A stretch of DNA of 64,000 bases, taken from positions 124,001 through 188,000 of the IMG/VR virus record IMGVR_UViG_3300022921_000002; one strand, written 5' to 3'. Every line of letters starts with the position of its first letter. The first letter of the stretch is position 1. Made by a program: the position numbers and the translations under genes. The notes under the pieces were generated by a model. It was not told the origin of the DNA and did no database searches. It worked only from the letters and a program-made list of their open reading frames with translations. Shown here one piece after another: positions 3,659 to 58,984 of the stretch.

Positions 3659-3673
3659 TATTTATTATAAATA
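3659..3673. promoter_or_regulatory. back-to-back T4-type late promoters
   Basis: Plus-strand TATAAATA at 3666-3673 before gp3; minus-strand AATAAATA at 3666-3659. Confidence 0.7.
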
Positions 3674-13901: not shown

Positions 13902-14885
13902 ATGAAACTATTAAGCTTAATGGTTGCTATAATAGCAACTGCCACTATGGCAACTGCACGTGACCAAGTTCACGTAGCTGGATCTTCAACAGTATTACCC
14001 TATGCAGCAATTGTTGCAGAGGCTTTTGGAGAAAACTTTGACTTTCCAACACCAGTAATCGAATCAGGTGGCTCAGGTGCTGGACGTAAAAGACTATGTG
14101 AGGGTGTTGGCGCAAACACTATTGATATAGCAAACTCATCATCACACATTAAAGATTCAGATATTGCACGGTGTGCTTCAAATGGTGTAAGTGAGCCAGT
14201 TGAAGTTCGTATTGGATATGATGGTATCGTATTTGCAAGCCGCTTAGAAACTAAAGGGTTTGAAAACATTACACCTATGCATATCTATTTGGCAATTTCA
14301 AATAAATCAAATGCAGAAAACTGGAAAGAAGTAGATCCAAACTTTCCGGATCGTCCAATCAAAACATTTATTCCAGGTACCAAGCATGGTACACGTGAAG
14401 TGTTTGATAAGAAGGTTATGGTATCAGGTTGTAAATCAGCCGGTTCATATGACTTGTTCTTTAAACAGAATGGTGGAGATAAAAAGAAAGCCGAAAAAGA
14501 ATGTATGAAAGTTCGTACTGATGGTGTAAGCATTGATATTGATGGTGACTATACTGAAACCTTAAATCGTTTGAAAAATAACCCAGAAGGTATTGGCGTG
14601 TTTGGTCTATCATTCTTGTTGAATAATACAGATTCAATCTATGCTGCAAATGTAAATGGTGTTGCGCCTTCAACTGAAACAATTGCATCTGGTGAGTATC
14701 CAATCTCTCGCCCTTTGCAGTTTTATGTAAAAATGGAGCATATTGATTTTATTCCTGGTCTTAAGGAATATATCCAGTTCTTTGTTTCTGATGATATGGC
14801 TGGTCCCGATAGCCCTCTTGCTGAATATGGACTAGTAAGTGATCCTGAGTTGGCAGCCACCCAAGAAATGGTTGACAATTTTTAA
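13902..14885 (+). CDS. pstS: phosphate ABC transporter substrate-binding protein PstS
   Basis: Signal peptide then RDQVHVAGSSTVLPYA, ESGGSGAG, DIANSS, GTKHGTREVF, YPISRPLQFYVK. Confidence 0.9.
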   Translation: MKLLSLMVAIIATATMATARDQVHVAGSSTVLPYAAIVAEAFGENFDFPTPVIESGGSGAGRKRLCEGVGANTIDIANSSSHIKDSDIARCASNGVSEPVEVRIGYDGIVFASRLETKGFENITPMHIYLAISNKSNAENWKEVDPNFPDRPIKTFIPGTKHGTREVFDKKVMVSGCKSAGSYDLFFKQNGGDKKKAEKECMKVRTDGVSIDIDGDYTETLNRLKNNPEGIGVFGLSFLLNNTDSIYAANVNGVAPSTETIASGEYPISRPLQFYVKMEHIDFIPGLKEYIQFFVSDDMAGPDSPLAEYGLVSDPELAATQEMVDNF

Positions 14886-15955: not shown

Positions 15956-15963
15956 TATAAATA
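15956..15963 (+). promoter_or_regulatory. T4-type late promoter
   Basis: TATAAATA. Confidence 0.6.
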
Positions 15964-18727: not shown

Positions 18728-18805
18728 CTGTATCATTTAAGTCACTAAAAATAATCAAAAATTTTATTTGGTTGACATTTCCGCAAAATAGTTTATATAT
18801 ATCTA

Positions 18806-19075
18806 GTAATCGTTGATACAAGTCAACGCATGGATCGGACCGCGGGGCAGTACCGCGCTGCTCCACCATAAACACATTGACAATAATTTTAGTGTGTTTA
18901 TGATGGGGCAGAACAAGGATCGACGGACGTGAAGAGATGAGAGTAGATTACCGTGTTGGCCTACGTTATTAAGCCAAAAATTTTAATTGCAAATGACAAT
19001 TATAAACCATCTGGATTTGCCCTAGCGGCGTAATCAAAGGGGGTTGGCCACTTACCTAGCAACAGAAAATGTGGC
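18806..19075 (+). ncRNA. ssrA: circularly permuted (two-piece) tmRNA, alphaproteobacterial type
   Basis: T-arm CGCGG-GGCAGTA-CCGCG and CTGCTCC-A-CCA (CCA 18866-18868) come first; then an intervening hairpin (18869-18904); then 5' piece GGGGCAG (18905) pairing with a G3:U; tag GCA AAT GAC AAT...GCG GCG TAA (18989-19033) = ANDNYKPSGFALAA. TTGACA at 18772. Outer ends approximate. Confidence 0.93.
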
Positions 19076-19105
19076 ATATTTTTAACAAACAATAAAGGAA
19101 GTAAT

Positions 19106-30655: not shown

Positions 30656-30816
30656 GACAATTTGTCACTGTTGTCTAAACCGAATAACGGCTATTCCAAA
30701 TTGGTAACCCTTATTTACCTATTTTCCTAATAAATATATTTGTAAAAAGGATTAAACCTAGGCATACGGTCTAGGATCGGATCATACAACATACACATAT
30801 ATTAGAGGAAACGGAA

Positions 30817-31047
30817 ATGACACAAGCAATCCTTATGGCCCACAGCTACTCAACGAGGGCAATTGAAACTATCATTGAAGCATACAGAACTTTCAAACAA
30901 GAGAGAGCTGCAAAGAAAATAGCTAAACAAACCATCAAAGAATTATCTAAATTAACTGATAAAGAGTTAAACGATATTGGTCTCAGTAGAGGTGATATTT
31001 GGTACATTGCTCATAATCAAAACGATAATTTGAGAGGGTGGGTTTAA
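30817..31047 (+). CDS. DUF1127 (YjiS-like) small protein
   Basis: ELSKLTDKELNDIGLSRGDI signature. Confidence 0.88.
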   Translation: MTQAILMAHSYSTRAIETIIEAYRTFKQERAAKKIAKQTIKELSKLTDKELNDIGLSRGDIWYIAHNQNDNLRGWV

Positions 31048-31226
31048 TGACAACTTTAGTAGCAAACTATGTCTTTTCGCCCTTGTCGGGTTTGTGGTCT
31101 TCACTAGATCGTTATTCGCAAATGATTGGCTACAGCCGAGCGGCAGCGGAGCTCGCAAGAATGGGTATGATAGAGGAATCGAAACGTTGTATGATGGAAA
31201 TCGGGAGATTGCAAAATGACCGGTGA
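31047..31226 (+). CDS. small hypothetical protein
   Basis: ATG at 31047; [14 protein letters not shown]. Confidence 0.65.
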
Positions 31227-31440
31227 TATCGCAACAATGGGTGCCTTAATTGGCGCAGGGCTAGCAACATTCGGAATGGGTGGCGCTGCCATCGGAGTAG
31301 GAATGATTGTTGGTAGTGTACTAAAAGTAATGCCTAAGAAACCAGATACAGGTACAATGTTTGTTGGTATTGCGTTTGCTGAAGCATTAGGAATCTTCGC
31401 ATTTCTCGTAGCGCTTTTGCTAATGTTTGCCGTTGTCTAA
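31216..31440 (+). CDS. atpE: F0 ATP synthase subunit c homologue with altered polar loop
   Basis: [18 protein letters not shown] helix 1; MFVGIAFAE56[16 protein letters not shown] helix 2; GGGAG RBS. Confidence 0.9.
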
Positions 31441-31653
31441 ATGGGGCCAACAACACCTTCGGCTGAGATAGTCGATAAGGTTGGTTTTTACGCTTTCTTT
31501 GTAATGACACTTTTAACTGTAGTGTGTATTGCATTTGGATTTTTTGCGGTAATTCAAAAGTTTAAACAACCTAATTGGTCCGAAGCTTGCATTGAGGCAG
31601 GCGGAGTTCCAGTCAAATTAGCTAAGTCAACATTCGACTGTAAAGTAATATAA
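31441..31653 (+). CDS. small single-pass membrane protein with C-terminal Cys pair
   Basis: Hydrophobic stretch, then CIEAGG...DC. Confidence 0.6.
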   Translation: MGPTTPSAEIVDKVGFYAFFVMTLLTVVCIAFGFFAVIQKFKQPNWSEACIEAGGVPVKLAKSTFDCKVI

Positions 31654-31657
31654 ATAA

Positions 31658-31684
31658 AAAGGTGTTCATTAGTTGGGCACCTTT
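31658..31684 (+). terminator. hairpin closing the DUF1127-atpE unit
   Basis: AAAGGTGTTCA-TTAGT-TGGGCACCTTT; TATAAATA at 31649 just upstream. Confidence 0.5.
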
Positions 31685-31705
31685 CATCATTTTAAAGGTT
31701 ATATT

Positions 31706-32347
31706 ATGCCAGTCTTTACAGTTGAAATCAACAATAAAGTAGTTGAGTTTACGCATATACCAAAATGCGGCGGTACATCCGCAAAATGTATGATGCTTGA
31801 AGCATCAGGATTTGATTGGAGAAACTCCCCGGCAAATGATTGGGGATTGCCAATAAGCCAAAGAAAACATCAAAAACAAAATAACAAATTCATGGATCGG
31901 CATGGAAAAGGTAAATTTGGTAACGTAGATTATCGGTTTACTATTATCCGTGATCCTATTAAAAGACTTGTGTCTTGTTATACAAACCGAGTGTTATTTT
32001 ATAATAAGATGAGAAATCGTGGGTGGGATAATTTTGTTGATAACTTAGGTAACTATGCAGCAGGTGATATTTCTCACCATTCTTTTCCAATGACGTATTG
32101 GCTAGGTAACGATCCTAACCGATATGATAAGATCTTTACAGTATCACAGGTTAGCACAGATATGCGTGAATGGTTATCAGAAATTGCAAACACTGATGTA
32201 CCTGCGCTGCAGCGACAAGATGGTGGTAGAGAAAAACAAAGTAAAATTGTTATTACTAAAGATCAGATAACAAGAATTAAAAAATACTATAAAAATGATT
32301 ATGAGAATTGGTGGAATGATAAGGTTGTTCCACAGGAGTTTGTATAA
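31706..32347 (+). CDS. sulfotransferase family 2 protein
   Basis: 5'-PSB HIPKCGGTS; 3'-PB RDPIKRLVSCY. Confidence 0.8.
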   Translation: MPVFTVEINNKVVEFTHIPKCGGTSAKCMMLEASGFDWRNSPANDWGLPISQRKHQKQNNKFMDRHGKGKFGNVDYRFTIIRDPIKRLVSCYTNRVLFYNKMRNRGWDNFVDNLGNYAAGDISHHSFPMTYWLGNDPNRYDKIFTVSQVSTDMREWLSEIANTDVPALQRQDGGREKQSKIVITKDQITRIKKYYKNDYENWWNDKVVPQEFV

Positions 32348-33027
32348 TGTATATCCCAGAAATCAATACTTATTTTGTCCATGTTCCTAAAGCAGGTGGA
32401 ACAAGTGTTGAATTATTCTTTCTTCGTAATGTATGTGGTTATCCTGACTTTCAAGAAAGAAATATGTTTCGGCAATTTATAACAAAATACGGTGGGCGAA
32501 TAAATGCCTCACGGTATCATTTTGGACAACCAACACCTGAAATATTACCTACTGGTGAAACACAGCATTTATCAGCATGGCAATTGAAAGCTTGGAATGA
32601 TAAAGCCTTCACAGGATCTAAATATACATTTGCATTTGTCCGAAATCCTTTTCATAAATTTGTATCTGAGGTTATTTGGAAGCGTGAAAGGCTACCTGGT
32701 AAAGTAAATATGACATTTGAACAGCAGATTAGAGCTATGGAAATGGAATATCAGCGGAATAATATGAAAATACGTACTCCGCATAATGCACCGCAATGGA
32801 AGTTTGTATATGATGAAAAAGATAATCTTATTGTTGATGATGTATTTAGACTCGAGGAAATGGATAAAGCACAAAAGGTTATATCGGAAAAACTCGGCAT
32901 ACCTATAAACTTTGGGCATGAAAATAGAACAGCACGAAAAGATTATAAAGAATATTTGAATGCCAATTTAGTAAAACAACTTAAACCGTTAATTCAAAAA
33001 GATATGGAAGTATTCGGTTATGATTAA
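32347..33027 (+). CDS. sulfotransferase family 2 protein
   Basis: HVPKAGGTS; RNPFHKFVS; FRLEEM. Confidence 0.82.
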   Translation: MYIPEINTYFVHVPKAGGTSVELFFLRNVCGYPDFQERNMFRQFITKYGGRINASRYHFGQPTPEILPTGETQHLSAWQLKAWNDKAFTGSKYTFAFVRNPFHKFVSEVIWKRERLPGKVNMTFEQQIRAMEMEYQRNNMKIRTPHNAPQWKFVYDEKDNLIVDDVFRLEEMDKAQKVISEKLGIPINFGHENRTARKDYKEYLNANLVKQLKPLIQKDMEVFGYD

Positions 33028-33727
33028 AACATTATGGATATATTGGAATACAGGAATTAAAGCAGCACCTCCAATTGTTCATAAATGCGTTGACAGTTGG
33101 AAACACCATAATCCTACATGGAAAATAGTATTACTTGATAATACAAATCTTAGGGATTATTACAAAGGCACACAAAATGGGCGTAGCATTCAGGCATGGT
33201 CTGATGTTGTTCGCATTAACTTACTTAAAGAATACGGCGGAGTATGGGTAGATGCAACCGTTGCTTGTAATAAACCACTTGATAGTTGGTTACCTGCTCA
33301 TGCTAAAACCGGTTTCTTTGCGTTCCGAAAACCAAAACCTGATACCGAAGTTGCAAGTTGGTTTCTATATGCTGATAAAGATAATTGCATTGTGGATCGG
33401 TGGAAATTATTGGTTGATGAATATTGGAAGAACCGCCCAAATATGGATTATCTGTGGTTTCATGGTTTATTTAATAATGTATTAGAAGACCCTGCTTGTC
33501 AGACAATGTGGAACAAAACTAAACCATGGCTGGCTAATCATAAACCGCTTCCTGAAACACCTGACAACCCACATTGGTTTACACCATATAATGCCAGCCG
33601 ATGGACAAAAATAAGAAAACAAGGATTGCCATTAACAGGACCTTGTTATAAATTAGCACATGGAACATCTAGGAGAATGATCCAAGAACCTACTATTATG
33701 AGGATATTTAATTATGAAAGTAAATAA
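33020..33727 (+). CDS. capsular-polysaccharide-synthesis / GT32-like glycosyltransferase
   Basis: IW.YW..G...AP.IV..C..SW; SDVVRINLLKEYGGVWVDAT. Confidence 0.82.
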   Translation: MIKTLWIYWNTGIKAAPPIVHKCVDSWKHHNPTWKIVLLDNTNLRDYYKGTQNGRSIQAWSDVVRINLLKEYGGVWVDATVACNKPLDSWLPAHAKTGFFAFRKPKPDTEVASWFLYADKDNCIVDRWKLLVDEYWKNRPNMDYLWFHGLFNNVLEDPACQTMWNKTKPWLANHKPLPETPDNPHWFTPYNASRWTKIRKQGLPLTGPCYKLAHGTSRRMIQEPTIMRIFNYESK

Positions 33728-34475
33728 GTATTATATAATTTATACTAATGATAACCTATCAAAACAATACGCAAATGATGCTGCCGAGCAATGTAAAAAG
33801 CTTGGAGTAAATTATGAGTTATACGAAGGATGGAAACCACAAGGTGGTCCTGGTCAAATGTGGAGAAAGTTTACCGCTGAAACAGGAATTCCAATCAAAT
33901 CATTTAAAAGAATGATGGTTGGTGCTCATGGTTGTATGGCTTCTCATTTACAATTATGGCAAAGGATTGTTCAGAATAAAGAATGTGCTGTTATATTAGA
34001 ACACGATGGGATGATGCTTCATAAAGTAAAGTTGGATATTCCTGATAACAAAATCGTTGCGTTAGGATACAAATATAGAGAATGGGAAAACTATGACTAT
34101 AAAACCGCAGGTCAACCCGAAAGAATTAAAGATGTGAAATTTCATCCAGGTTCTCATGCGTATGCTATTACACACATTACCGCGCAGAAAATGATTGATG
34201 AAGTAACAAAGGTAGGTGTTACCGAGGCAATTGATAATCGTTGGTTTATGAGCAGTCGGAAAAATTTTACTAAAATACCAATGGCTATTTGTGATCCTAT
34301 AGCAGCAATTGGGTGGTTAAGATTATCAACTATTCAGAAATATAGTGCCACTCATAATAATCATGCCGAAATGTTAGAATCTTTTAAGAACAACTTTAAA
34401 GGTCAGCTAAAGGAATCAATCGTTATACCCAAAGGGTCTGTAAATATTATAAATAGAAACAAAATCAGAGAATAG
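33714..34475 (+). CDS. glycosyltransferase family 25-like
   Basis: GCMASHLQLWQRIV, ILEHD, GSHAYAIT. Confidence 0.75.
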   Translation: MKVNKYYIIYTNDNLSKQYANDAAEQCKKLGVNYELYEGWKPQGGPGQMWRKFTAETGIPIKSFKRMMVGAHGCMASHLQLWQRIVQNKECAVILEHDGMMLHKVKLDIPDNKIVALGYKYREWENYDYKTAGQPERIKDVKFHPGSHAYAITHITAQKMIDEVTKVGVTEAIDNRWFMSSRKNFTKIPMAICDPIAAIGWLRLSTIQKYSATHNNHAEMLESFKNNFKGQLKESIVIPKGSVNIINRNKIRE

Positions 34476-34484
34476 AGGTATCTT

Positions 34485-37400
34485 ATGGCAGACGAAAGCA
34501 ATAAGGACAAAAAGAAAAAGGTTAAGGGATTTAAAGAATTTGATCCTGGAAACTATATTGATATTGAACCTACTATCAATGAAGCAAAAGTAGGCGAGGT
34601 TGTTATTTCTTGGGGACGTATGAACCCTATTACAACTGGGCACGAAAAACTTATCAATAGAGTTTTAAATGTAGCAAAATCAAAGAATGCTATTCCTGCT
34701 GTATTTTTAACACATTCTCAAGATAAAACAAAAAATCCATTGTCATATAATGATAAGATCAAATATGCCGAGGTAGCATTTGGTAAAATCATTAAAAGAT
34801 CAACTGCCAAGACAATCATTCAATTAATGCAGCAGTTACAAAAGAAATTTAAAAAGGTAACTCTCGTTGTTGGTTCTGACCGATATAAAGAGATGGATAC
34901 ATTGCTTAACAAATACAATGGTAAAGAATATAAATTTGATGAAATAGAAGTTGTATCCGCAGGTGCTAGAGATCCTGACGCTGAAGGTGTTAAAGGAATG
35001 TCAGCATCAAAAATGCGTGAGTATGCTGTTTCAGATAATATCAAAAAGTTTACTACAGGATTACCTAGTAAGCTAAAAACAAGCGCGGCCGACATTATGG
35101 CCAGCATTAAAAAGGGAATGGGAATGTCGGAAGAATATAACGAAGATAACTTTATCGAAGAAGATGAATTAGACGAAGCTTTGACTCGACAGCAGCGTAT
35201 TAAACGCGGCCGTCAAATGCGAAGAATGCGTGTTAAAATGAAACGAGGTCGGGAAAAGGCAAAGCGGCGCCGTGCCAATATTGATGTTTTGAAAAGAAGA
35301 TCAAGAAAAGCAGCACGTAATATAATTAAAAAGCGTCTTGCTGGTAATAAACGATATGCTGATATGGAGCCTGCGGAAAAGGAACGTATTGATAAACGCA
35401 TTGAAAAGATTTCAAAACAACGTATTGATAACCTGGCAATTAAATTGTTACCTTCTGTTAAAAAGAAAGAACGTGAGAGATTACAAGCACGTCATAATAA
35501 GAATGAGTCTGTTGATCTGAATGAGATGTGGGGTGCATATGTAACTAAGCGACCACATATGCTTATGGATAAAAACAACAAACCAAAGTTTGATAAACGG
35601 TTTAAGATGTTTAAACCTAAACAAGTTACAGAGATGAATGAGTTTGATATTGAAGATATCGTTGAACTTATGGAATCAGTTGAAAAATTTACCGAAACAA
35701 CAGGTAAATATTACACAGGTGTTGCTAAAAATAAGAAAGATGACCGTGAAGATCATTTTGAACGTAATGCTAAAAAGGCTGATGATGATCCTTCAGCATA
35801 TAGGCCAGCACCAGGTGATAAAGAAGCAAAGACAAAAGAATCAAAGCATACAAAAAAAGCACGAGCGATGGGTTACACTGAAGAATTTGATTTTTTAGGT
35901 GAAGATGCCGCAGGCAAATCATTAGCTGATAAAGCAAAGAAATCTGACATGCCTGCAGGGATTTTACGTAAAGTATATAACCGTGGTGTTGCCGCATGGA
36001 AAACAGGTCACCGCCCAGGAACAACACCTGAACAATGGGGACATGCTCGAGTAAATTCATTTATTACTAAATCCTCTGGTACATGGGGTAAGGCTGATAA
36101 AGACCTTGCTGCAAAGGTTAATGAATCAGTAGAAACAGTTAATGAAGTTAGGAGAAACGCTATGGCTGCCAAGCCTAAGAACACTAAAGCAGAACGTGAG
36201 AGTAGACTAGCACAGAATATGAAAAAATTAAAGGATATGCGTAAATCTGATAAGTCTTGGGGTAAATCAAGCGCATTTGATTATCACGAGGAAGTAGAAC
36301 TTGACGAATTAACAGCAGCTGAGAAAAAGCTAGTAAATCAAATGTATGATAAAAAAGGCAACCTCACACCACATGGTAAAAAAGTAATGAACCACGGTAA
36401 GAAAAAAGGTGATAAAGGTTTTGTTGAATCGTTAGATGATAAGTTTGAAGCATTCATCTCACTTAATGAAGCCGCAACGCCTCAAATGAAAAAGGCAGCT
36501 GCAAGTATCGAAGCATATGCAAAGAAAAGCGGTGGCATTGATAAAGCAGACTTTATGAAAGCAGCAAAGATGCTATCATCTGGTAATGCTGGTATAAAAT
36601 TCGTTAAATTTGTAGATGATCTTGATACAGAACCACGCGAATGGTTAATCACTAATCTTGCTAAGACTATGGGTAAACAAACAGTTGAAAAAATGTTTAA
36701 AGTTAAAATCCGTGAAGAAGTAGAACTAGATGAAGCCGAAATGAGCCTATATGATAAAATAAAGGCAGCAAGAGCAAACCCATCACCAGACAAGCCTGCA
36801 AGAGGTCGTGGATCAAAAAATCGTAATCCAAAAACTTATGACCCACGCAAAGCACTAGACAAAGAAGATGATCGTCTTCAAGGTATGGTAAAGAAAAAAT
36901 TGAAAAAAGAAGAGTTTGAACTTGATGAAGATCTTACACACCAGACAGTAAAGCCACCGAATCATACTAAAAAGTTTTCTGGGAAAGATTCTCGTGACAC
37001 ACAAGACACATCGGCGAATGAGTGGGATGCGCCAGGTAATAAGCGTCATACTGTAACGAGTAGTCAAGCAGATGCTCATGATAAAACTGCTGCACATCAC
37101 AATGAGGTTGCGGATGCTCATACAAAGGCAGGCGAAAAATCTTCTAGTCCAACTTTACAAAGATTGCATCACCAAGCCTCAGTCCATCATAAGAAGGCAG
37201 CAGAAGCACACTTTAATGCTTCTCATTCTAGTTCAGGTGCAGATAAAGATGGTTCTATTCAAAAAAAGGCAAAGGATCTGCATATGGCATACCATCTAAC
37301 TATGCATGCTAACAAGATGTCTCAAGAAGTAAGAAATAAGGGTTCTAAAGCAAAGCGTATCCTTGAAGAAGTAGAAGAGCTTGATGAAGATGCTAAAATG

Positions 37401-37748
37401 AAAAAGCAATCTGATGATAACCTAAAAAGTTTACATAAGCAATTCAAAGGTCAAGATCAAAAAATGCCATCAACTCAGCATATGATGAAGCGTATCACTA
37501 AAGAAATGAAACGCCGTAATATGGGTGAGTCTGAAGAAGCAGCAAAGTTAGCATCTGTTGCTAACGGTGGTGTTCAGGATAAAGAAGATAAATTTAGAAA
37601 TGCATTAAACCGTGTTCGTAATAAAAAATCAATGAAAGATGAAAGCTCTTGTGGATCATCAAAGAAAAGAAATGAAGAAGCTGGCGCAGGCGAAGAAGGT
37701 ACAGCTAAATTAGTTAAAAGACTAAAGAAGGATACACCTAATGCATAG
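34485..37748 (+). CDS. 1087-aa virion polyprotein: N-terminal cytidylyltransferase-like (HxGH) domain plus modules separated by L/I-x-E sites
   Basis: GRMNPITTGHEKL, LVVGSDR, SAGARDPD, MSASKMR; repeated EEVELDE linkers; TATAAATA at 34448. Confidence 0.8.
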   Translation: MADESNKDKKKKVKGFKEFDPGNYIDIEPTINEAKVGEVVISWGRMNPITTGHEKLINRVLNVAKSKNAIPAVFLTHSQDKTKNPLSYNDKIKYAEVAFGKIIKRSTAKTIIQLMQQLQKKFKKVTLVVGSDRYKEMDTLLNKYNGKEYKFDEIEVVSAGARDPDAEGVKGMSASKMREYAVSDNIKKFTTGLPSKLKTSAADIMASIKKGMGMSEEYNEDNFIEEDELDEALTRQQRIKRGRQMRRMRVKMKRGREKAKRRRANIDVLKRRSRKAARNIIKKRLAGNKRYADMEPAEKERIDKRIEKISKQRIDNLAIKLLPSVKKKERERLQARHNKNESVDLNEMWGAYVTKRPHMLMDKNNKPKFDKRFKMFKPKQVTEMNEFDIEDIVELMESVEKFTETTGKYYTGVAKNKKDDREDHFERNAKKADDDPSAYRPAPGDKEAKTKESKHTKKARAMGYTEEFDFLGEDAAGKSLADKAKKSDMPAGILRKVYNRGVAAWKTGHRPGTTPEQWGHARVNSFITKSSGTWGKADKDLAAKVNESVETVNEVRRNAMAAKPKNTKAERESRLAQNMKKLKDMRKSDKSWGKSSAFDYHEEVELDELTAAEKKLVNQMYDKKGNLTPHGKKVMNHGKKKGDKGFVESLDDKFEAFISLNEAATPQMKKAAASIEAYAKKSGGIDKADFMKAAKMLSSGNAGIKFVKFVDDLDTEPREWLITNLAKTMGKQTVEKMFKVKIREEVELDEAEMSLYDKIKAARANPSPDKPARGRGSKNRNPKTYDPRKALDKEDDRLQGMVKKKLKKEEFELDEDLTHQTVKPPNHTKKFSGKDSRDTQDTSANEWDAPGNKRHTVTSSQADAHDKTAAHHNEVADAHTKAGEKSSSPTLQRLHHQASVHHKKAAEAHFNASHSSSGADKDGSIQKKAKDLHMAYHLTMHANKMSQEVRNKGSKAKRILEEVEELDEDAKMKKQSDDNLKSLHKQFKGQDQKMPSTQHMMKRITKEMKRRNMGESEEAAKLASVANGGVQDKEDKFRNALNRVRNKKSMKDESSCGSSKKRNEEAGAGEEGTAKLVKRLKKDTPNA
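36288..37388 (+). repeat. dispersed EE(V/F)E(E)LDE-coding linker repeats
   Basis: GAGGAAGTAGAACTTGACGAA 36288, GAAGAAGTAGAACTAGATGAA 36714, GAAGAGTTTGAACTTGATGAA 36909, GAAGAAGTAGAAGAGCTTGATGAA 37365. Confidence 0.8.
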
Positions 37749-51841: not shown

Positions 51842-52401
51842 ATTGGGAAACATTTATAGAACAGAACTATGAGCATGCTTGCAATACAAAAACTGATATT
51901 GATGAGCATCTGCCAATCCTAAGAGCATTAGGTGACCAATGCGACCATATTACAGAAATGGGTGTTAGGTTTGGTGCAAGTTCAAAAGCATTCTTATGCT
52001 GTGACGTAACACTTATTTCATATGATATTGAATATAACGAACAAGTAAATAGATTATTTGAAATTGCAAAAGATGCTGGTAAATCGGTTGAGTACATTAT
52101 TCAAGATGTTCTCAAAACAGAAATTGTACCAACTGACTTGTTGTTTATTGATACATGGCACTCAAACGAGCAATTGAGACAAGAACTTGCATTGCACGGA
52201 AATCAAGCACAGAAATTTCTAGTGTTCCATGATACACAAACTTATGGTCTTCAAGATGAAAGTTGGAATAAGATTAAACCGAGTGAACCGGGGTGTGGTT
52301 TGTTACCTGCCATTATTGATTTTATAATTGAAAATCCGCATTGGCAATTCCATACACACCGAACAAATTGTAATGGACTGACTGTATTAGAGAGAAGATA
52401 A
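51838..52401 (+). CDS. class I SAM-dependent methyltransferase
   Basis: TEMGVRFGAS, DLLFIDT.H, VFHDT. Confidence 0.75.
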   Translation: MNWETFIEQNYEHACNTKTDIDEHLPILRALGDQCDHITEMGVRFGASSKAFLCCDVTLISYDIEYNEQVNRLFEIAKDAGKSVEYIIQDVLKTEIVPTDLLFIDTWHSNEQLRQELALHGNQAQKFLVFHDTQTYGLQDESWNKIKPSEPGCGLLPAIIDFIIENPHWQFHTHRTNCNGLTVLERR

Positions 52402-53948
52402 TGATTGTAGATTGCTTTCCGTTTTTTGCACCGACAAATGAAGAAATACTATATTTAAGAGTTAACCTACTCAAAGATGTTGTTGATAAATTTATTATTG
52501 TTGAAAGTAACAAAACTCATAGTGGTGAACCTGTTGAGCGTCGGTTCCTTGAGATTGCTCGTAATCAAGGTTTGCCGATGGAAAAGATCATTTATATTGA
52601 GCATGATATTCCTGAAACTGAAGATTTAAAAACATTAGCAATTGATAGAGTAAACGCAGGTACTAATAAAAATAATATTGATTCATTATATGCAAGAGTA
52701 CGTGAGCGTTTACAAAAAGATGCTTGTATCAATGCTTTTAATCAATTTAATGATGATGACGTTTTTATCTATGGTGATGCCGATGAGATTATCAATCCTC
52801 AGCATGTGGAATGGTTAGCAAACCTGTGCCGCGCCAATACATCCGTGATTTTAAAAATACCTCTTGTTTATTTACAAGGTCGTGCAGATCTGCGTGTCCA
52901 TCACCGCAATGGTCAACCGCTTATTTGGATGCGTGCTATGTTCTTTGCAACAAAGGGACAGATATGGAAAAATGGTGGTTTTAATAATATTCGTTGTGGT
53001 AATATGCAGGATGATGTTAGATTTCCTATTCAAGATGGTAAAGTCATACAGGATCTTGGGTGGCATTTGGCATGGATGGGAACAAACGACCAACGTAATA
53101 AAAAAGCACGTTCATTTGCTCATGCCTTTGATAAATTCCAATGGATGAAGAAACAAGATGATTTTGTGAACGGTGGATACGAAAAACATTTCAATAGCAA
53201 TGATCCAGTTGAAGGTGGTATTGCACCTGATGGAAATCCTGGGCATATATTGAAAAGATATCCTCTCGATAAATTACCAAAAATGCTACTTGATACTCCA
53301 TACCTTAGTAAATTCTTTTTACCTGAAGTTGATATAATGAAAGAGTTTACGTTTAATCACTGTGTTTGTTATTGGTGCCAAAAATTGGATTGGCCTTTGA
53401 TGTATGATCTTGACGGCGATGGTAAAAAGACATGGTTTGAAATACCACGGAGTTGTTCTGTCACAGTAAAAGAAAGTCATCCTAACCGCAAGCAAGTTAG
53501 CCAGGATGATCCTGAGTACAAAAATGCAAAAAAACCACTCATTATATTTACAGAACCCGTTGAAAGGTTTTTGTCTTGTATGAACGTATATCTTGTACCA
53601 GGTCAACGGTATTACGATTATGGTAAAGATATTTTTAAATCATTTGATGTTAATCTTGAAGATTGTACCAAACAAGAAAAGATTGATTATTTCTTTACAC
53701 ATTTAAATAAGGTGTGTTCTTATCATCAAGTACACCATTTCCATCCGCAAGTTAGATTTATTGATTTTGAAACATTTGATGAGTTTACGGTTATCAACAA
53801 ACACGAAACAAGTAATTATCTTGGAACTGACCGTGTAATGAATAAAACAACAAAAGAAATAAATGAAAGCGATTTAACCAAAGATCAACTTGACTTCATA
53901 CGTTGGGTTTATCGAGAAGATTACGAGTTCTTTAAAAATTATGGCTAA
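52401..53948 (+). CDS. GT17-like glycosyltransferase fused to a degenerate sulfotransferase-like domain
   Basis: IVDCFPFF...E.L.LR...L..VVD.FIIVES..THSG; GDADEI; GWHLAW; C-terminal FEIPRSCSVT, EPVERFLS, HFHPQ. Confidence 0.75.
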   Translation: MIVDCFPFFAPTNEEILYLRVNLLKDVVDKFIIVESNKTHSGEPVERRFLEIARNQGLPMEKIIYIEHDIPETEDLKTLAIDRVNAGTNKNNIDSLYARVRERLQKDACINAFNQFNDDDVFIYGDADEIINPQHVEWLANLCRANTSVILKIPLVYLQGRADLRVHHRNGQPLIWMRAMFFATKGQIWKNGGFNNIRCGNMQDDVRFPIQDGKVIQDLGWHLAWMGTNDQRNKKARSFAHAFDKFQWMKKQDDFVNGGYEKHFNSNDPVEGGIAPDGNPGHILKRYPLDKLPKMLLDTPYLSKFFLPEVDIMKEFTFNHCVCYWCQKLDWPLMYDLDGDGKKTWFEIPRSCSVTVKESHPNRKQVSQDDPEYKNAKKPLIIFTEPVERFLSCMNVYLVPGQRYYDYGKDIFKSFDVNLEDCTKQEKIDYFFTHLNKVCSYHQVHHFHPQVRFIDFETFDEFTVINKHETSNYLGTDRVMNKTTKEINESDLTKDQLDFIRWVYREDYEFFKNYG

Positions 53949-57448: not shown

Positions 57449-57621
57449 TGTTTAAATTGTTTAAATCTAATACAGACGCAGAAATTGATTTTGGGCAAGA
57501 TGTATCAATGGTACCACAGATTGAAATAGTACCTGAGCCATCATTATCAGATATGCTCAAATTGGTTGAAGAACGTCTTGACCGTATTGAAAGTAAAATT
57601 GACAAACTACTCAATGAGTAA
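57448..57621 (+). CDS. hypothetical protein, 57 aa
   Basis: Hand-translated MFKLFKSNTD...RLDRIESKIDKLLNE. Confidence 0.55.
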   Translation: MFKLFKSNTDAEIDFGQDVSMVPQIEIVPEPSLSDMLKLVEERLDRIESKIDKLLNE

Positions 57622-58984
57622 GGTTTGGTTAGGTATAAGTGAAGGCTTCCATGATGCCGGTGTAAGTATGATTTGGAACGGGCAAATATTGTCGGCAACT
57701 CATGCTGAACGGTTTAGTCGTAAAAAGAATGACCGTTGGGTTCATCCTATGCAGTATCCGCAAGGTATTAATAACGGATATGATAAGATTGCTTTTTATG
57801 AAAAACCTTGGTTGAAAACAACGCGTCAGCTATGGGCAGGTCAAGGTTTAAAACCAAAACGTACTAAATACAACAAGTCATTCCATCACCATGAGTCTCA
57901 TGCTGCCGCAGGGTTTTATACTTCAAAGTTTGATTCCTGTAATATTTTAGTTATTGATGCAATTGGTGAATGGGATACTGTTTCCGTTTGGAAAGCATGG
58001 ACGAAGAACGGTATACCAAAAATGATTAAATTAAAATCATATAAGTATCCGTTTTCAGTGGGTTTGTTTTATTCAGCAATTACTAAATCAATTAAATTGA
58101 AGCCACAGGAAGATGAATATATTACCATGGGTATGGCAGCATACGGCGAGCCAATTTATACCGATGAGCTCAAAGAAATAATGCTACACAAAAATTGCCA
58201 TAAAGGAATAGCGCAATTTCAATATGCAAAAGATGAAGATATTGCGGCATCAGCACAAAAGGTTGTTGAAGATTTCATTATTGAAATGGTAAAAGATTAT
58301 TGCCCACACGAAAACCTGATTATGATGGGTGGTGTGGCATTGAATTGTGTTGCGAATACAAAGGTTGCTGAACTTGGTAAAAACATTTGGATTATGCCAA
58401 ATCCTGGTGATTGTGGATCTTCATTAGGTGCTGCGGCACTAGGTTATGGAAAGAAATTGATATGGGAAGATCCATATCTTGGAACGGAGATTAAAAATGA
58501 AGTACAAATTAGTGGCGTTGTTCAGCATCTTATTGATAATTCCTATTGCGGTATTGCGAATGGCCGCGCTGAGTTTGGCCCTCGTGCCCTTGGCAATCGT
58601 AGCCTTATCGCTGACCCTCGACGAGATGTTAAAGATACCGTTAACGAAATTAAACGTAGACAAAAATTTCGACCCTTTGCACCTGCGATCCTGGAAGAAT
58701 TTGCTAATGAATATTTCCAAGGACCAATGAATGAGTATATGCAATTTGTGGCGCAAGCCAAACACGACTATAAATCTGTAACCCACGTTGATGGTTCAGC
58801 ACGTGTTCAAATTGTAAAACCAAACTGTAAATCTATATTACGCCCAATACTTGAGGAATGGTATGAAAAGACAGGTTGTCCAATGTTATTGAATACGAGT
58901 TTAAATATTAAAGGTCAACCGATGGTTGATACTTGGGAACACGCATTAGAATTTGAAAAGAAATATAATGTTAAAGTCTTCTAA
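57614..58984 (+). CDS. carbamoyltransferase, NodU/CmcH/TobZ family
   Basis: GISEGFHDAG, AERFSR.KND, HHESHAAAG, IDAIGE, GGVALNC, EFGPRALGNRS, KRRQKFRPFAP, THVDGSAR, LNTSLN. Confidence 0.93.
   Translation: MSKVWLGISEGFHDAGVSMIWNGQILSATHAERFSRKKNDRWVHPMQYPQGINNGYDKIAFYEKPWLKTTRQLWAGQGLKPKRTKYNKSFHHHESHAAAGFYTSKFDSCNILVIDAIGEWDTVSVWKAWTKNGIPKMIKLKSYKYPFSVGLFYSAITKSIKLKPQEDEYITMGMAAYGEPIYTDELKEIMLHKNCHKGIAQFQYAKDEDIAASAQKVVEDFIIEMVKDYCPHENLIMMGGVALNCVANTKVAELGKNIWIMPNPGDCGSSLGAAALGYGKKLIWEDPYLGTEIKNEVQISGVVQHLIDNSYCGIANGRAEFGPRALGNRSLIADPRRDVKDTVNEIKRRQKFRPFAPAILEEFANEYFQGPMNEYMQFVAQAKHDYKSVTHVDGSARVQIVKPNCKSILRPILEEWYEKTGCPMLLNTSLNIKGQPMVDTWEHALEFEKKYNVKVF

Follow-up and report, generated by a model that had tools for sequence, protein, structure and literature searches.

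An ATP synthase c subunit with a rebuilt F1-docking loop and a strictly paired membrane protein, encoded by uncultured marine T4-like phages

In the ATP synthase c subunit encoded by the DNA analysed here (64,000 nucleotides, positions 124,001 to 188,000 of IMG/VR record IMGVR_UViG_3300022921_000002, hereafter the window), the proton-handling half of the protein is kept, the half linking it to ATP production is rebuilt, and this form is held across many ocean phage genomes. Phages carry host genes that sustain energy production, for example the photosystem genes of cyanophages, and the phage c subunit (phage c) differs from such AMGs in this respect. Judged from the sequences, phage c together with its neighbour tm70 probably alters host membrane energetics and is not a spare part. 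The gene encoding phage c comes third in a row of four closely packed small genes, and a terminator-like hairpin closes the cassette. The features of the cassette, with positions in the window, are as follows.

30714..30736, + strand: conserved element TTTACC-N8-TAATAAATA in the 161-nt intergenic region 5' of the cassette, read from sequence
30757..30775, + strand: small leader hairpin with arms CCTAGG / CTAGG in the 5' leader of the DUF1127 gene, read from sequence
30817..31047, + strand: DUF1127 / YjiS-like protein, 76 aa, first cassette gene (PF06568, 39.5 bits, cutoff 23.3; phrog_26566)
31038..31226, + strand: p62, 62 aa, a family without a name (GTG start at 31038 or ATG at 31047; 11-nt overlap with the start of c)
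31216..31440, + strand: phage c subunit, 74 aa, ATG start and TAA stop, with helix 1 at about residues 8-36, the rebuilt cytoplasmic loop at 37-47 and helix 2 at 48-73 with Glu56 (Pfam, alignment, column statistics, dN/dS, tree)
31441..31653, + strand: tm70, a 70-aa orphan single-pass membrane protein with its ATG directly after the c stop codon
31649-31656, + strand: TATAAATA late-promoter-like box for the next gene (sequence scan)
31658..31684, + strand: terminator-like hairpin, 11 pairs and then a T-rich tail, the longest stem among the terminator-like sites

By family, phage c is a c subunit. PF00137 (ATP-synt_C) was matched at 48.4 bits (gathering cutoff 24) by residues 12-69 over profile positions 1-60 of 60, and the best solved relative was the c subunit of Paracoccus denitrificans (5DN6 chain J, E = 2e-16). 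The carboxylate of helix 2, Glu56, lies within A-F-A-E-A-L-G-I-F and was invariant in the alignment of 47 distinct phage and 74 distinct cellular sequences, so that the AtpE-like identity with Glu56 proposed in a first-pass annotation is borne out in all relatives examined. In helix 2 (F49-A72), the phage and cellular consensus sequences agree at 22 of 24 positions, and the helix 1 glycines G20, G22, G23, G27, G29 and G33 are identical to those of the nearest Rhodobacterales. The replacement of one stripe glycine by alanine, which the same annotation had reported, is therefore not found in the window's copy; G27A or G29A was seen only in some sister phage copies.

The polar loop had been described as lacking Arg-[Asn/Gln]-Pro, and this was confirmed well beyond the window. 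Residues 34-47 contain no R-[N/Q]-P, the loop reading K-V-M-P-K-K-P-D, and the motif was present in 0 of 86 phage copies versus 80 of the 80 nearest cellular copies (all Rhodobacterales), every one of which has the loop G-A-[L/F]-R-N-P...Q-T. A cellular AtpE carrying the phage loop was not found among these 80 nearest genomes. The loop, estimated earlier to be about 5 residues shorter, proved to be 5 residues shorter in the alignments with Rhodobacterales and Paracoccus c. Lys41-Lys42 stand opposite the host Arg-Asn in both the HMMER and the MAFFT alignment, and in the HMMER alignment Pro43 is also paired with the host Pro and is immediately followed by the 5-residue deletion. Since K-K-P is aligned with the host R-N-P and a deletion follows, the motif has been replaced and the loop rebuilt, not merely lost; of the earlier description of a "lost F1-coupling loop", the absence of the motif stands and the simple loss does not. 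Each of K37, M39, P40, K41, K42, D44 and T47 was conserved at 97% or above in the column statistics, and L-K-x-M-P-K-K is the conserved new loop motif of the window's clade.

The rebuilt loop is a part of the c subunit to which F1 binding has been assigned in the literature. According to Fraga et al. 1994, as cited in PMC6063947, Arg41 of the E. coli c subunit is essential for F1 binding and F1-Fo coupling, and the Fo proton conductance of R41K is normal. The c loop is given as the epsilon-binding domain (Hermolin et al. 1999, a reference in PMC5376962), binding of the loop to both epsilon and gamma is indicated by the references in PMC5376962, and even N-type rings have a conserved RQPD loop (PMC5376962).

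Phage c fails three tested defining features of a functional AtpE, namely the loop motif, the equivalog score and the operon context. The score against NF005733, the NCBIfam equivalog of the alphaproteobacterial AtpE type, was 67.6 bits, below the cutoff of 85, and phage c was far under every cutoff of the remaining NCBIfam c-subunit equivalogs. The gene has no Fo operon setting and is flanked by p62 and tm70, whereas a/c/b'/b-sized neighbours were present at 74 of 80 cellular c loci (Pfam-verified in L090). With Fo a, b' and b queries from eight Rhodobacterales operons, the c gene was the only match in the window, and ORFs of alpha/beta size have other Pfam assignments; the claim that the window holds no other atp gene is thus valid for a, b' and b, the search having covered these three, and for alpha and beta as judged by ORF size and Pfam. 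With regard to the AMG criteria, a host homologue, a phage genomic context and a phage-matching composition were all found, but the host functional motif (F1 docking) is replaced in all phage copies. The view of a remodelled rotor subunit instead of a plain AMG has accordingly held up, as the loop Arg is gone in all phage copies, the score is below the equivalog cutoff and there is no atp operon. The partner gene tm70, the position of K-K-P opposite R-N-P and the stepwise change of the loop across phage clades go beyond that earlier view.

Relatives of phage c were found on at least 83 IMG/VR contigs, and phage homologues with the same type of loop, for which the first-pass annotation had suggested a search, form a short-loop clade. 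The protein database contained dozens of phage c clusters (73-77 aa, 75-95% identity, Tara samples included), and one 90% cluster comprised 183 member sequences from 112 contigs, also including Tara samples. Relatives with a differing loop have gp45/gp44/RegA on one side and DNA polymerase genes on the other, or lie on a 328-kb contig rich in translation genes, and these phage-gene neighbours indicate that they too are phage copies. A tblastn search of phage c against 50,697 GenBank phage records gave zero matches, indicating that no cultured phage carries the gene. No published description of a phage-encoded c subunit was found in the full-text literature searched, where absence is not proof of absence, and phage c is unmentioned in the pelagimyophage survey and in a recent large aquatic-phage paper.

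In the tree built after removal of the loop columns, in which the labelled cellular c sequences were those of Rhodobacterales, all the phage copies fell to the same side of one branch (support 91/73, not starred; 88% of bootstrap trees), and the short-loop clade was well supported (99/95). This is consistent with a single capture of a host atpE of the Rhodobacterales type, which is probable and not proven. When the tree was rooted on the cellular sequences, full-length loops of the form A-M-P-H-R-S-x-E-Q made up a basal grade and the M-P-K-K clade was derived, the basal phage clades having Ala/Met at the host Arg/Asn positions and the derived clade having Lys-Lys and the deletion. This order indicates that Arg and Asn were lost first and that the 5-residue deletion came later.

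The GC3 of phage c (0.333) was close to that of the phage polB (0.337), versus a median of 0.76 for cellular atpE. In the short-loop clade, with a dS of about 0.9, the dN/dS was 0.085 overall, with 0.037 in helix 2, 0.097 in the N-terminus and helix 1, and about 0.09 (0.091) in the loop. The loop value, together with the high conservation of the loop residues, indicates that the rebuilt loop is a selected feature and not the result of decay. Read from these substitution rates, c has been held by the phage lineage for a long time under strong purifying selection. Cellular contamination and recent capture were ruled out by context, GC3 and dS.

One member of the phage c family is filed in GenBank under a bacterial name. 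HAW04348.1 (protein P0253), from a MAG, is labelled 'F0F1 ATP synthase subunit C [Saprospirales bacterium]'; P0008, a sister protein in the same clade, is located in a phage cassette, and HAW04348.1 is probably from a mis-binned phage contig.

Phage c and tm70 are strictly paired in both directions and form a functional unit. In a profile search for tm70, all 66 viral loci had c directly upstream (66/66), and a tblastn match to tm70 was found just 3' of c in 75 of 80 loci, the rest being contig ends or a diverged form that keeps the membrane helix only. As DUF1127-p62 was found without c and tm70 always with c, the functional unit is c plus tm70. The tm70 family is small, with 7 representative clusters among 1.84 billion proteins, and no Pfam, PHROG, PDB profile or Foldseek (E > 3) match was obtained. 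In the AlphaFold2 model (pLDDT 83), helix 6-42 is followed by helix 46-52 and a beta-hairpin at 55-59/65-69. The invariant residues of the membrane helix, which has no charged residue, are G15, F19, M22, L25, C29, G33 and V37 and lie along one helix face, and those of the tail are W46, C50, G54, G55, P57, D66, C67 and K68, with C50 and C67 in the predicted small helix and the beta-hairpin. A truncated subunit b or b' was ruled out as the identity of tm70 (hhalign probability 0.1% and 1.2%).

Nearly every related locus keeps the gene order of the cassette, its starts and stops abutting or overlapping and its outer neighbours varying. The DUF1127 gene was located about 400 nt 5' of c in 72 of 80 IMG/VR loci, and DUF1127-p62 was found in 336 viral stretches. 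The DUF1127/YjiS-like gene is always followed by p62, the two making up a widespread two-gene unit of marine T4-like phages. For p62, the family alignment (A3) displayed an invariant G-x-x-R-A-A-x-x-L-x-x-x-G core, and the AlphaFold2 model is a two-helix hairpin (pLDDT 74); its 1756 metagenomic relatives are all unnamed and without Pfam domains, and neither a PDB profile match nor a fold match (Foldseek, E > 3) was found. An obligatory partnership of p62 with c was ruled out, since c was missing, together with tm70, from at least 52 of the 80 DUF1127-p62 loci examined, where other cargo occupies the slot. In two c-less sister phages (L188:2693-3097 and L243:2721-3137), the slot after p62 holds a cytochrome c with a signal peptide (PF00034, 48 bits) and DoxX (PF07681). 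The slot downstream of p62 has the look of a variable island with respiratory or membrane cargo, and in some sister phages the cassette sits in an island of small membrane proteins. No PHROG match was found for c, p62 or tm70, none of the four cassette proteins was matched by the PADLOC defence-system models, and p62, tm70 and DUF1127 were not found near cellular atpE.

With regard to control elements, the conserved element at 30714..30736 is a possible promoter, as read from its pattern: among 54 distinct upstream regions from related loci, 13 have the same TTTACC-N8 element, with NATAAATA lying 50-90 nt ahead of the DUF1127 start, and a simple sigma-70 scan did not flag the window's element. 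An exact T4 late-promoter box was absent 5' of the cassette, where only a one-mismatch NATAAATA-type element was found. The leader hairpin of the DUF1127 gene may be a regulatory RNA element; a hairpin is present at the same leader site in three related loci (L002, L016, L019), with arms that differ in sequence yet are complementary, and a conserved ATCGGATCA stretch lies 3' of it in related phages. Terminator-like sites were more frequent in the region than expected (10 found versus 1.8). Boxes of the T4 late-promoter consensus TATAAATA were located at 3666, 15956, 19960, 23477, 27604, 31649, 34448 and 38855, 8/8 on the + strand, and their count was no higher than chance. Most of them are 20-40 nt before a start codon; from the box at 15956, the distance to the next listed ORF is about 310 nt.

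The window is from an uncultured marine T4-like myovirus. Its replication set includes topoisomerase II, UvsW, a gp46-like SMC protein, a family B DNA polymerase, UvsX, a DnaB-type helicase and ribonucleotide reductase, the GC content is about 37%, and almost every gene has the same orientation. Among cultured phages, the cyanomyophages are the best relatives for the polymerase, at an identity of only about 44%, and no DNA similarity to GenBank phages longer than a 53-nt stretch was found. The cassette region is identical to a 221-kb IMG/VR contig, and in relatives the same cassette is flanked by gp45, gp44 and RegA. The nearest 80 cellular c subunits, all from Rhodobacterales, were 56-70% identical to phage c, and a permuted two-piece alpha-type tmRNA was located at 18768-19076 on the + strand (ARAGORN; Rfam alpha_tmRNA 106.7 bits, tmRNA_permuted 108.8 bits), with the tag peptide A-N-D-N-Y-K-P-S-G-F-A-L-A-A. 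Both point to an alphaproteobacterial host, which is probably of the Rhodobacterales type; low-GC pelagic Rhodobacterales (30-36% GC) are present among the genomes of the cellular relatives. A phage-encoded permuted tmRNA of alphaproteobacterial type is an unusual phage gene and a useful host clue.

Other genes of the window and of one relative were recorded in passing. A PstS-type phosphate-binding protein (PBP_like_2, 166 bits) is encoded at 13902-14885, inside the replication module. Directly 3' of the cassette, at 31673-37748, is a surface-polysaccharide modification cluster encoding two sulfotransferases, a capsule-synthesis-type glycosyltransferase, a family 25 glycosyltransferase and a 1087-aa protein with a cytidylyltransferase domain and DUF5824, and more glycosyl- and carbamoyl-transferases are encoded at 52401-53948 and 57566-58984. 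On the 328-kb ENA contig (L081), the same cassette lies beside genes encoding IF3, ribosomal protein S21, HSP20, ClpS, IMPDH, PEPCK, a xanthine/uracil permease and a class II aminoacyl-tRNA synthetase, almost all on one strand. This contig is probably from a jumbo phage with an unusual set of translation and metabolism genes.

For the mechanism, we tentatively propose that c and tm70 form or join rotor rings that would bind protons and fit the host stator, would be unable to dock F1 and would divert proton flow. Co-assembly with host c, uncoupling or an independent proton leak had been put forward in the first-pass annotation, likewise as hypotheses. During infection, c and tm70 would insert in the inner membrane and give rotor-type rings, made of phage c alone or mixed with host c, in which proton binding and the fit to host stator subunit a would be kept. 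The host-like helix 2 and the fully conserved Glu56 argue that the carboxylate and the subunit-a-facing surface are still in use. Docking of the gamma/epsilon foot of F1 would fail, because the loop Arg for F1 binding is gone and the loop tip is proposed to be lower. This would yield either Fo-like units lacking F1 or hybrid rotors that are poisoned, and proton flow would be diverted from ATP synthesis into a controlled leak or uncoupling, with tm70 as the putative dedicated assembly, plug or gating subunit. Candidate benefits to the phage are lysis timing, the exclusion of superinfecting phages that depend on membrane potential to bring in their DNA, and faster respiration. That a c-ring freed from F1, with tm70 as its dedicated orphan subunit, would act in infected cells as a regulated conduit for protons, a device of the phage's own, is possible but rather doubtful.

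Several considerations count against this proposal or limit it. T4-like phages usually shut off host gene expression, and such a shut-off may leave little new stator (a, b, b'), which would favour stand-alone phage rings; we know of no subunit exchange by pre-existing host c rings. A proton leak would be costly to the phage, so that tight control would be needed. The high conservation of helix 2 could instead reflect ring packing and contact with tm70, not with subunit a, and as Lys at the Arg position is a conservative change, some F1 contact may persist in the short-loop clade.

The shut-off of the host also bears on the idea that c and tm70 form a ring without any host Fo subunit, acting as an ion channel or pore with tm70 as its plug or gate and serving in depolarisation, lysis timing or superinfection exclusion. 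Phage rings left without new stators, as would be expected from general knowledge of T4-like phages, are in line with it, and so are the strict pairing of c with tm70, the lack of any other atp gene found in the window, and the small-membrane-protein island around the cassette in some sister phages. Ion conduction has been reported for purified c-rings without F1, together with the proposal that F1 is the gate of such a ring, and the phage device would be comparable to the proposed mitochondrial F1-gated c-ring leak channel (PMC9433415). However, a stator-free pore has no obvious need for an invariant Glu56 or for a host-frozen helix 2, lipid-facing positions included, the c-ring channel idea is itself contested, and no endolysin was found among the genes adjoining the cassette. 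The M15 peptidase of a sister phage has no homologue in the window. We regard this stand-alone pore as rather unlikely. The same host-like helix 2 makes phage c compatible in sequence with host c and a, and the conserved helix face of tm70 is suited to packing on another membrane helix, as would be needed if phage c in host rings, or tm70 wedged against them, stopped rotation and blocked pumping or synthesis with no leak. Neither a brake-like sequence feature nor a charged residue in the membrane helix of tm70 was found, however, and an F1-docking loop that was rebuilt and then conserved would be left unexplained, so that blocked rotation is distinctly unlikely.

An ordinary AMG, by which phage c would top up the host c pool and couple to F1 with Lys41 in place of Arg, would agree with K-K-P opposite R-N-P, with the host-like membrane part and with the public annotation 'F0F1 ATP synthase subunit C'. 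It is very improbable in view of the basal phage clades, which have Ala/Met instead of Lys in the same cassette; in E. coli, coupling fails in R41K (Fraga et al. 1994, as cited in PMC6063947), the loop carries the 5-residue deletion, the equivalog score is under the cutoff, R-N-P is kept by all 80 cellular relatives, and a spare part needs no obligatory orphan partner. An origin of the gene in cellular DNA mis-assembled into a viral contig, or in a captured gene under decay, could appeal to the single GenBank MAG record labelled Saprospirales, but it is hardly credible given the number of viral contigs with the same cassette and T4-like neighbours, the phage-like GC3, and the low dN/dS at the dS observed.

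If the proposed diversion of proton flow by c and tm70 is true, it would represent a new form of viral control over membrane potential and ATP yield in hosts that belong to the abundant marine Alphaproteobacteria, the loops would provide natural variants for studies of F1-Fo coupling, and tm70 would be a new, presumably c-ring-binding protein. If the reading as a regulated conduit is also true, this would be the first natural virus-encoded c-ring function independent of F1, and a natural test case for the disputed idea of a c-ring leak channel. The public label 'F0F1 ATP synthase subunit C' on phage copies would mislead counts of metabolic genes in viromes.

Compared with known systems, phage c is most like the AtpE of Rhodobacterales and Paracoccus denitrificans (5DN6 chain J; NF005733), with which it shares the two-helix hairpin, the helix 1 glycines, a near-identical helix 2 and the Glu. 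It differs from them in the loop, where their R-N-P-S-A-A-x-x-Q is replaced by K-K-P and a 5-residue deletion, and in its setting, as the Rhodobacterales gene is in an atpB-atpE-atpF'-atpF operon and the phage gene is phage-encoded and paired with tm70. The E. coli uncE loop mutants cR41K/H are similar in that the loop Arg is changed and the membrane part is intact, and the R41K phenotype is the prediction for phage c. The cQ42E and cP43 mutants of E. coli uncE are likewise polar-loop mutants. Unlike these laboratory point mutants of a chromosomal gene, phage c is natural and long conserved, with a deletion, a new motif and a partner protein.

With the mitochondrial c-ring leak channel, itself disputed, the similarity is one of concept only, namely ion conduction by a c-ring without F1 (PMC9433415); that channel differs in being eukaryotic, pathological and contested, with no partner gene and no change in the c sequence. 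Small single-pass subunits, namely Voa1 and Ac45/ATP6AP1, are contained in the proteolipid rings of V-ATPases. Their likeness to tm70 is an analogy only, that of a small single-pass protein dedicated to a rotor ring, and no sequence or fold similarity was found between them. As a host-derived membrane energy gene in a variable island, phage c also resembles the energy AMGs that marine T4-like phages carry (psbA and the like in cyanophages, cytochrome c and DoxX in the sister phages), but those AMGs keep the functional motifs of the host, whereas in phage c it is specifically the motif for connection with the other parts of the host enzyme that is gone.
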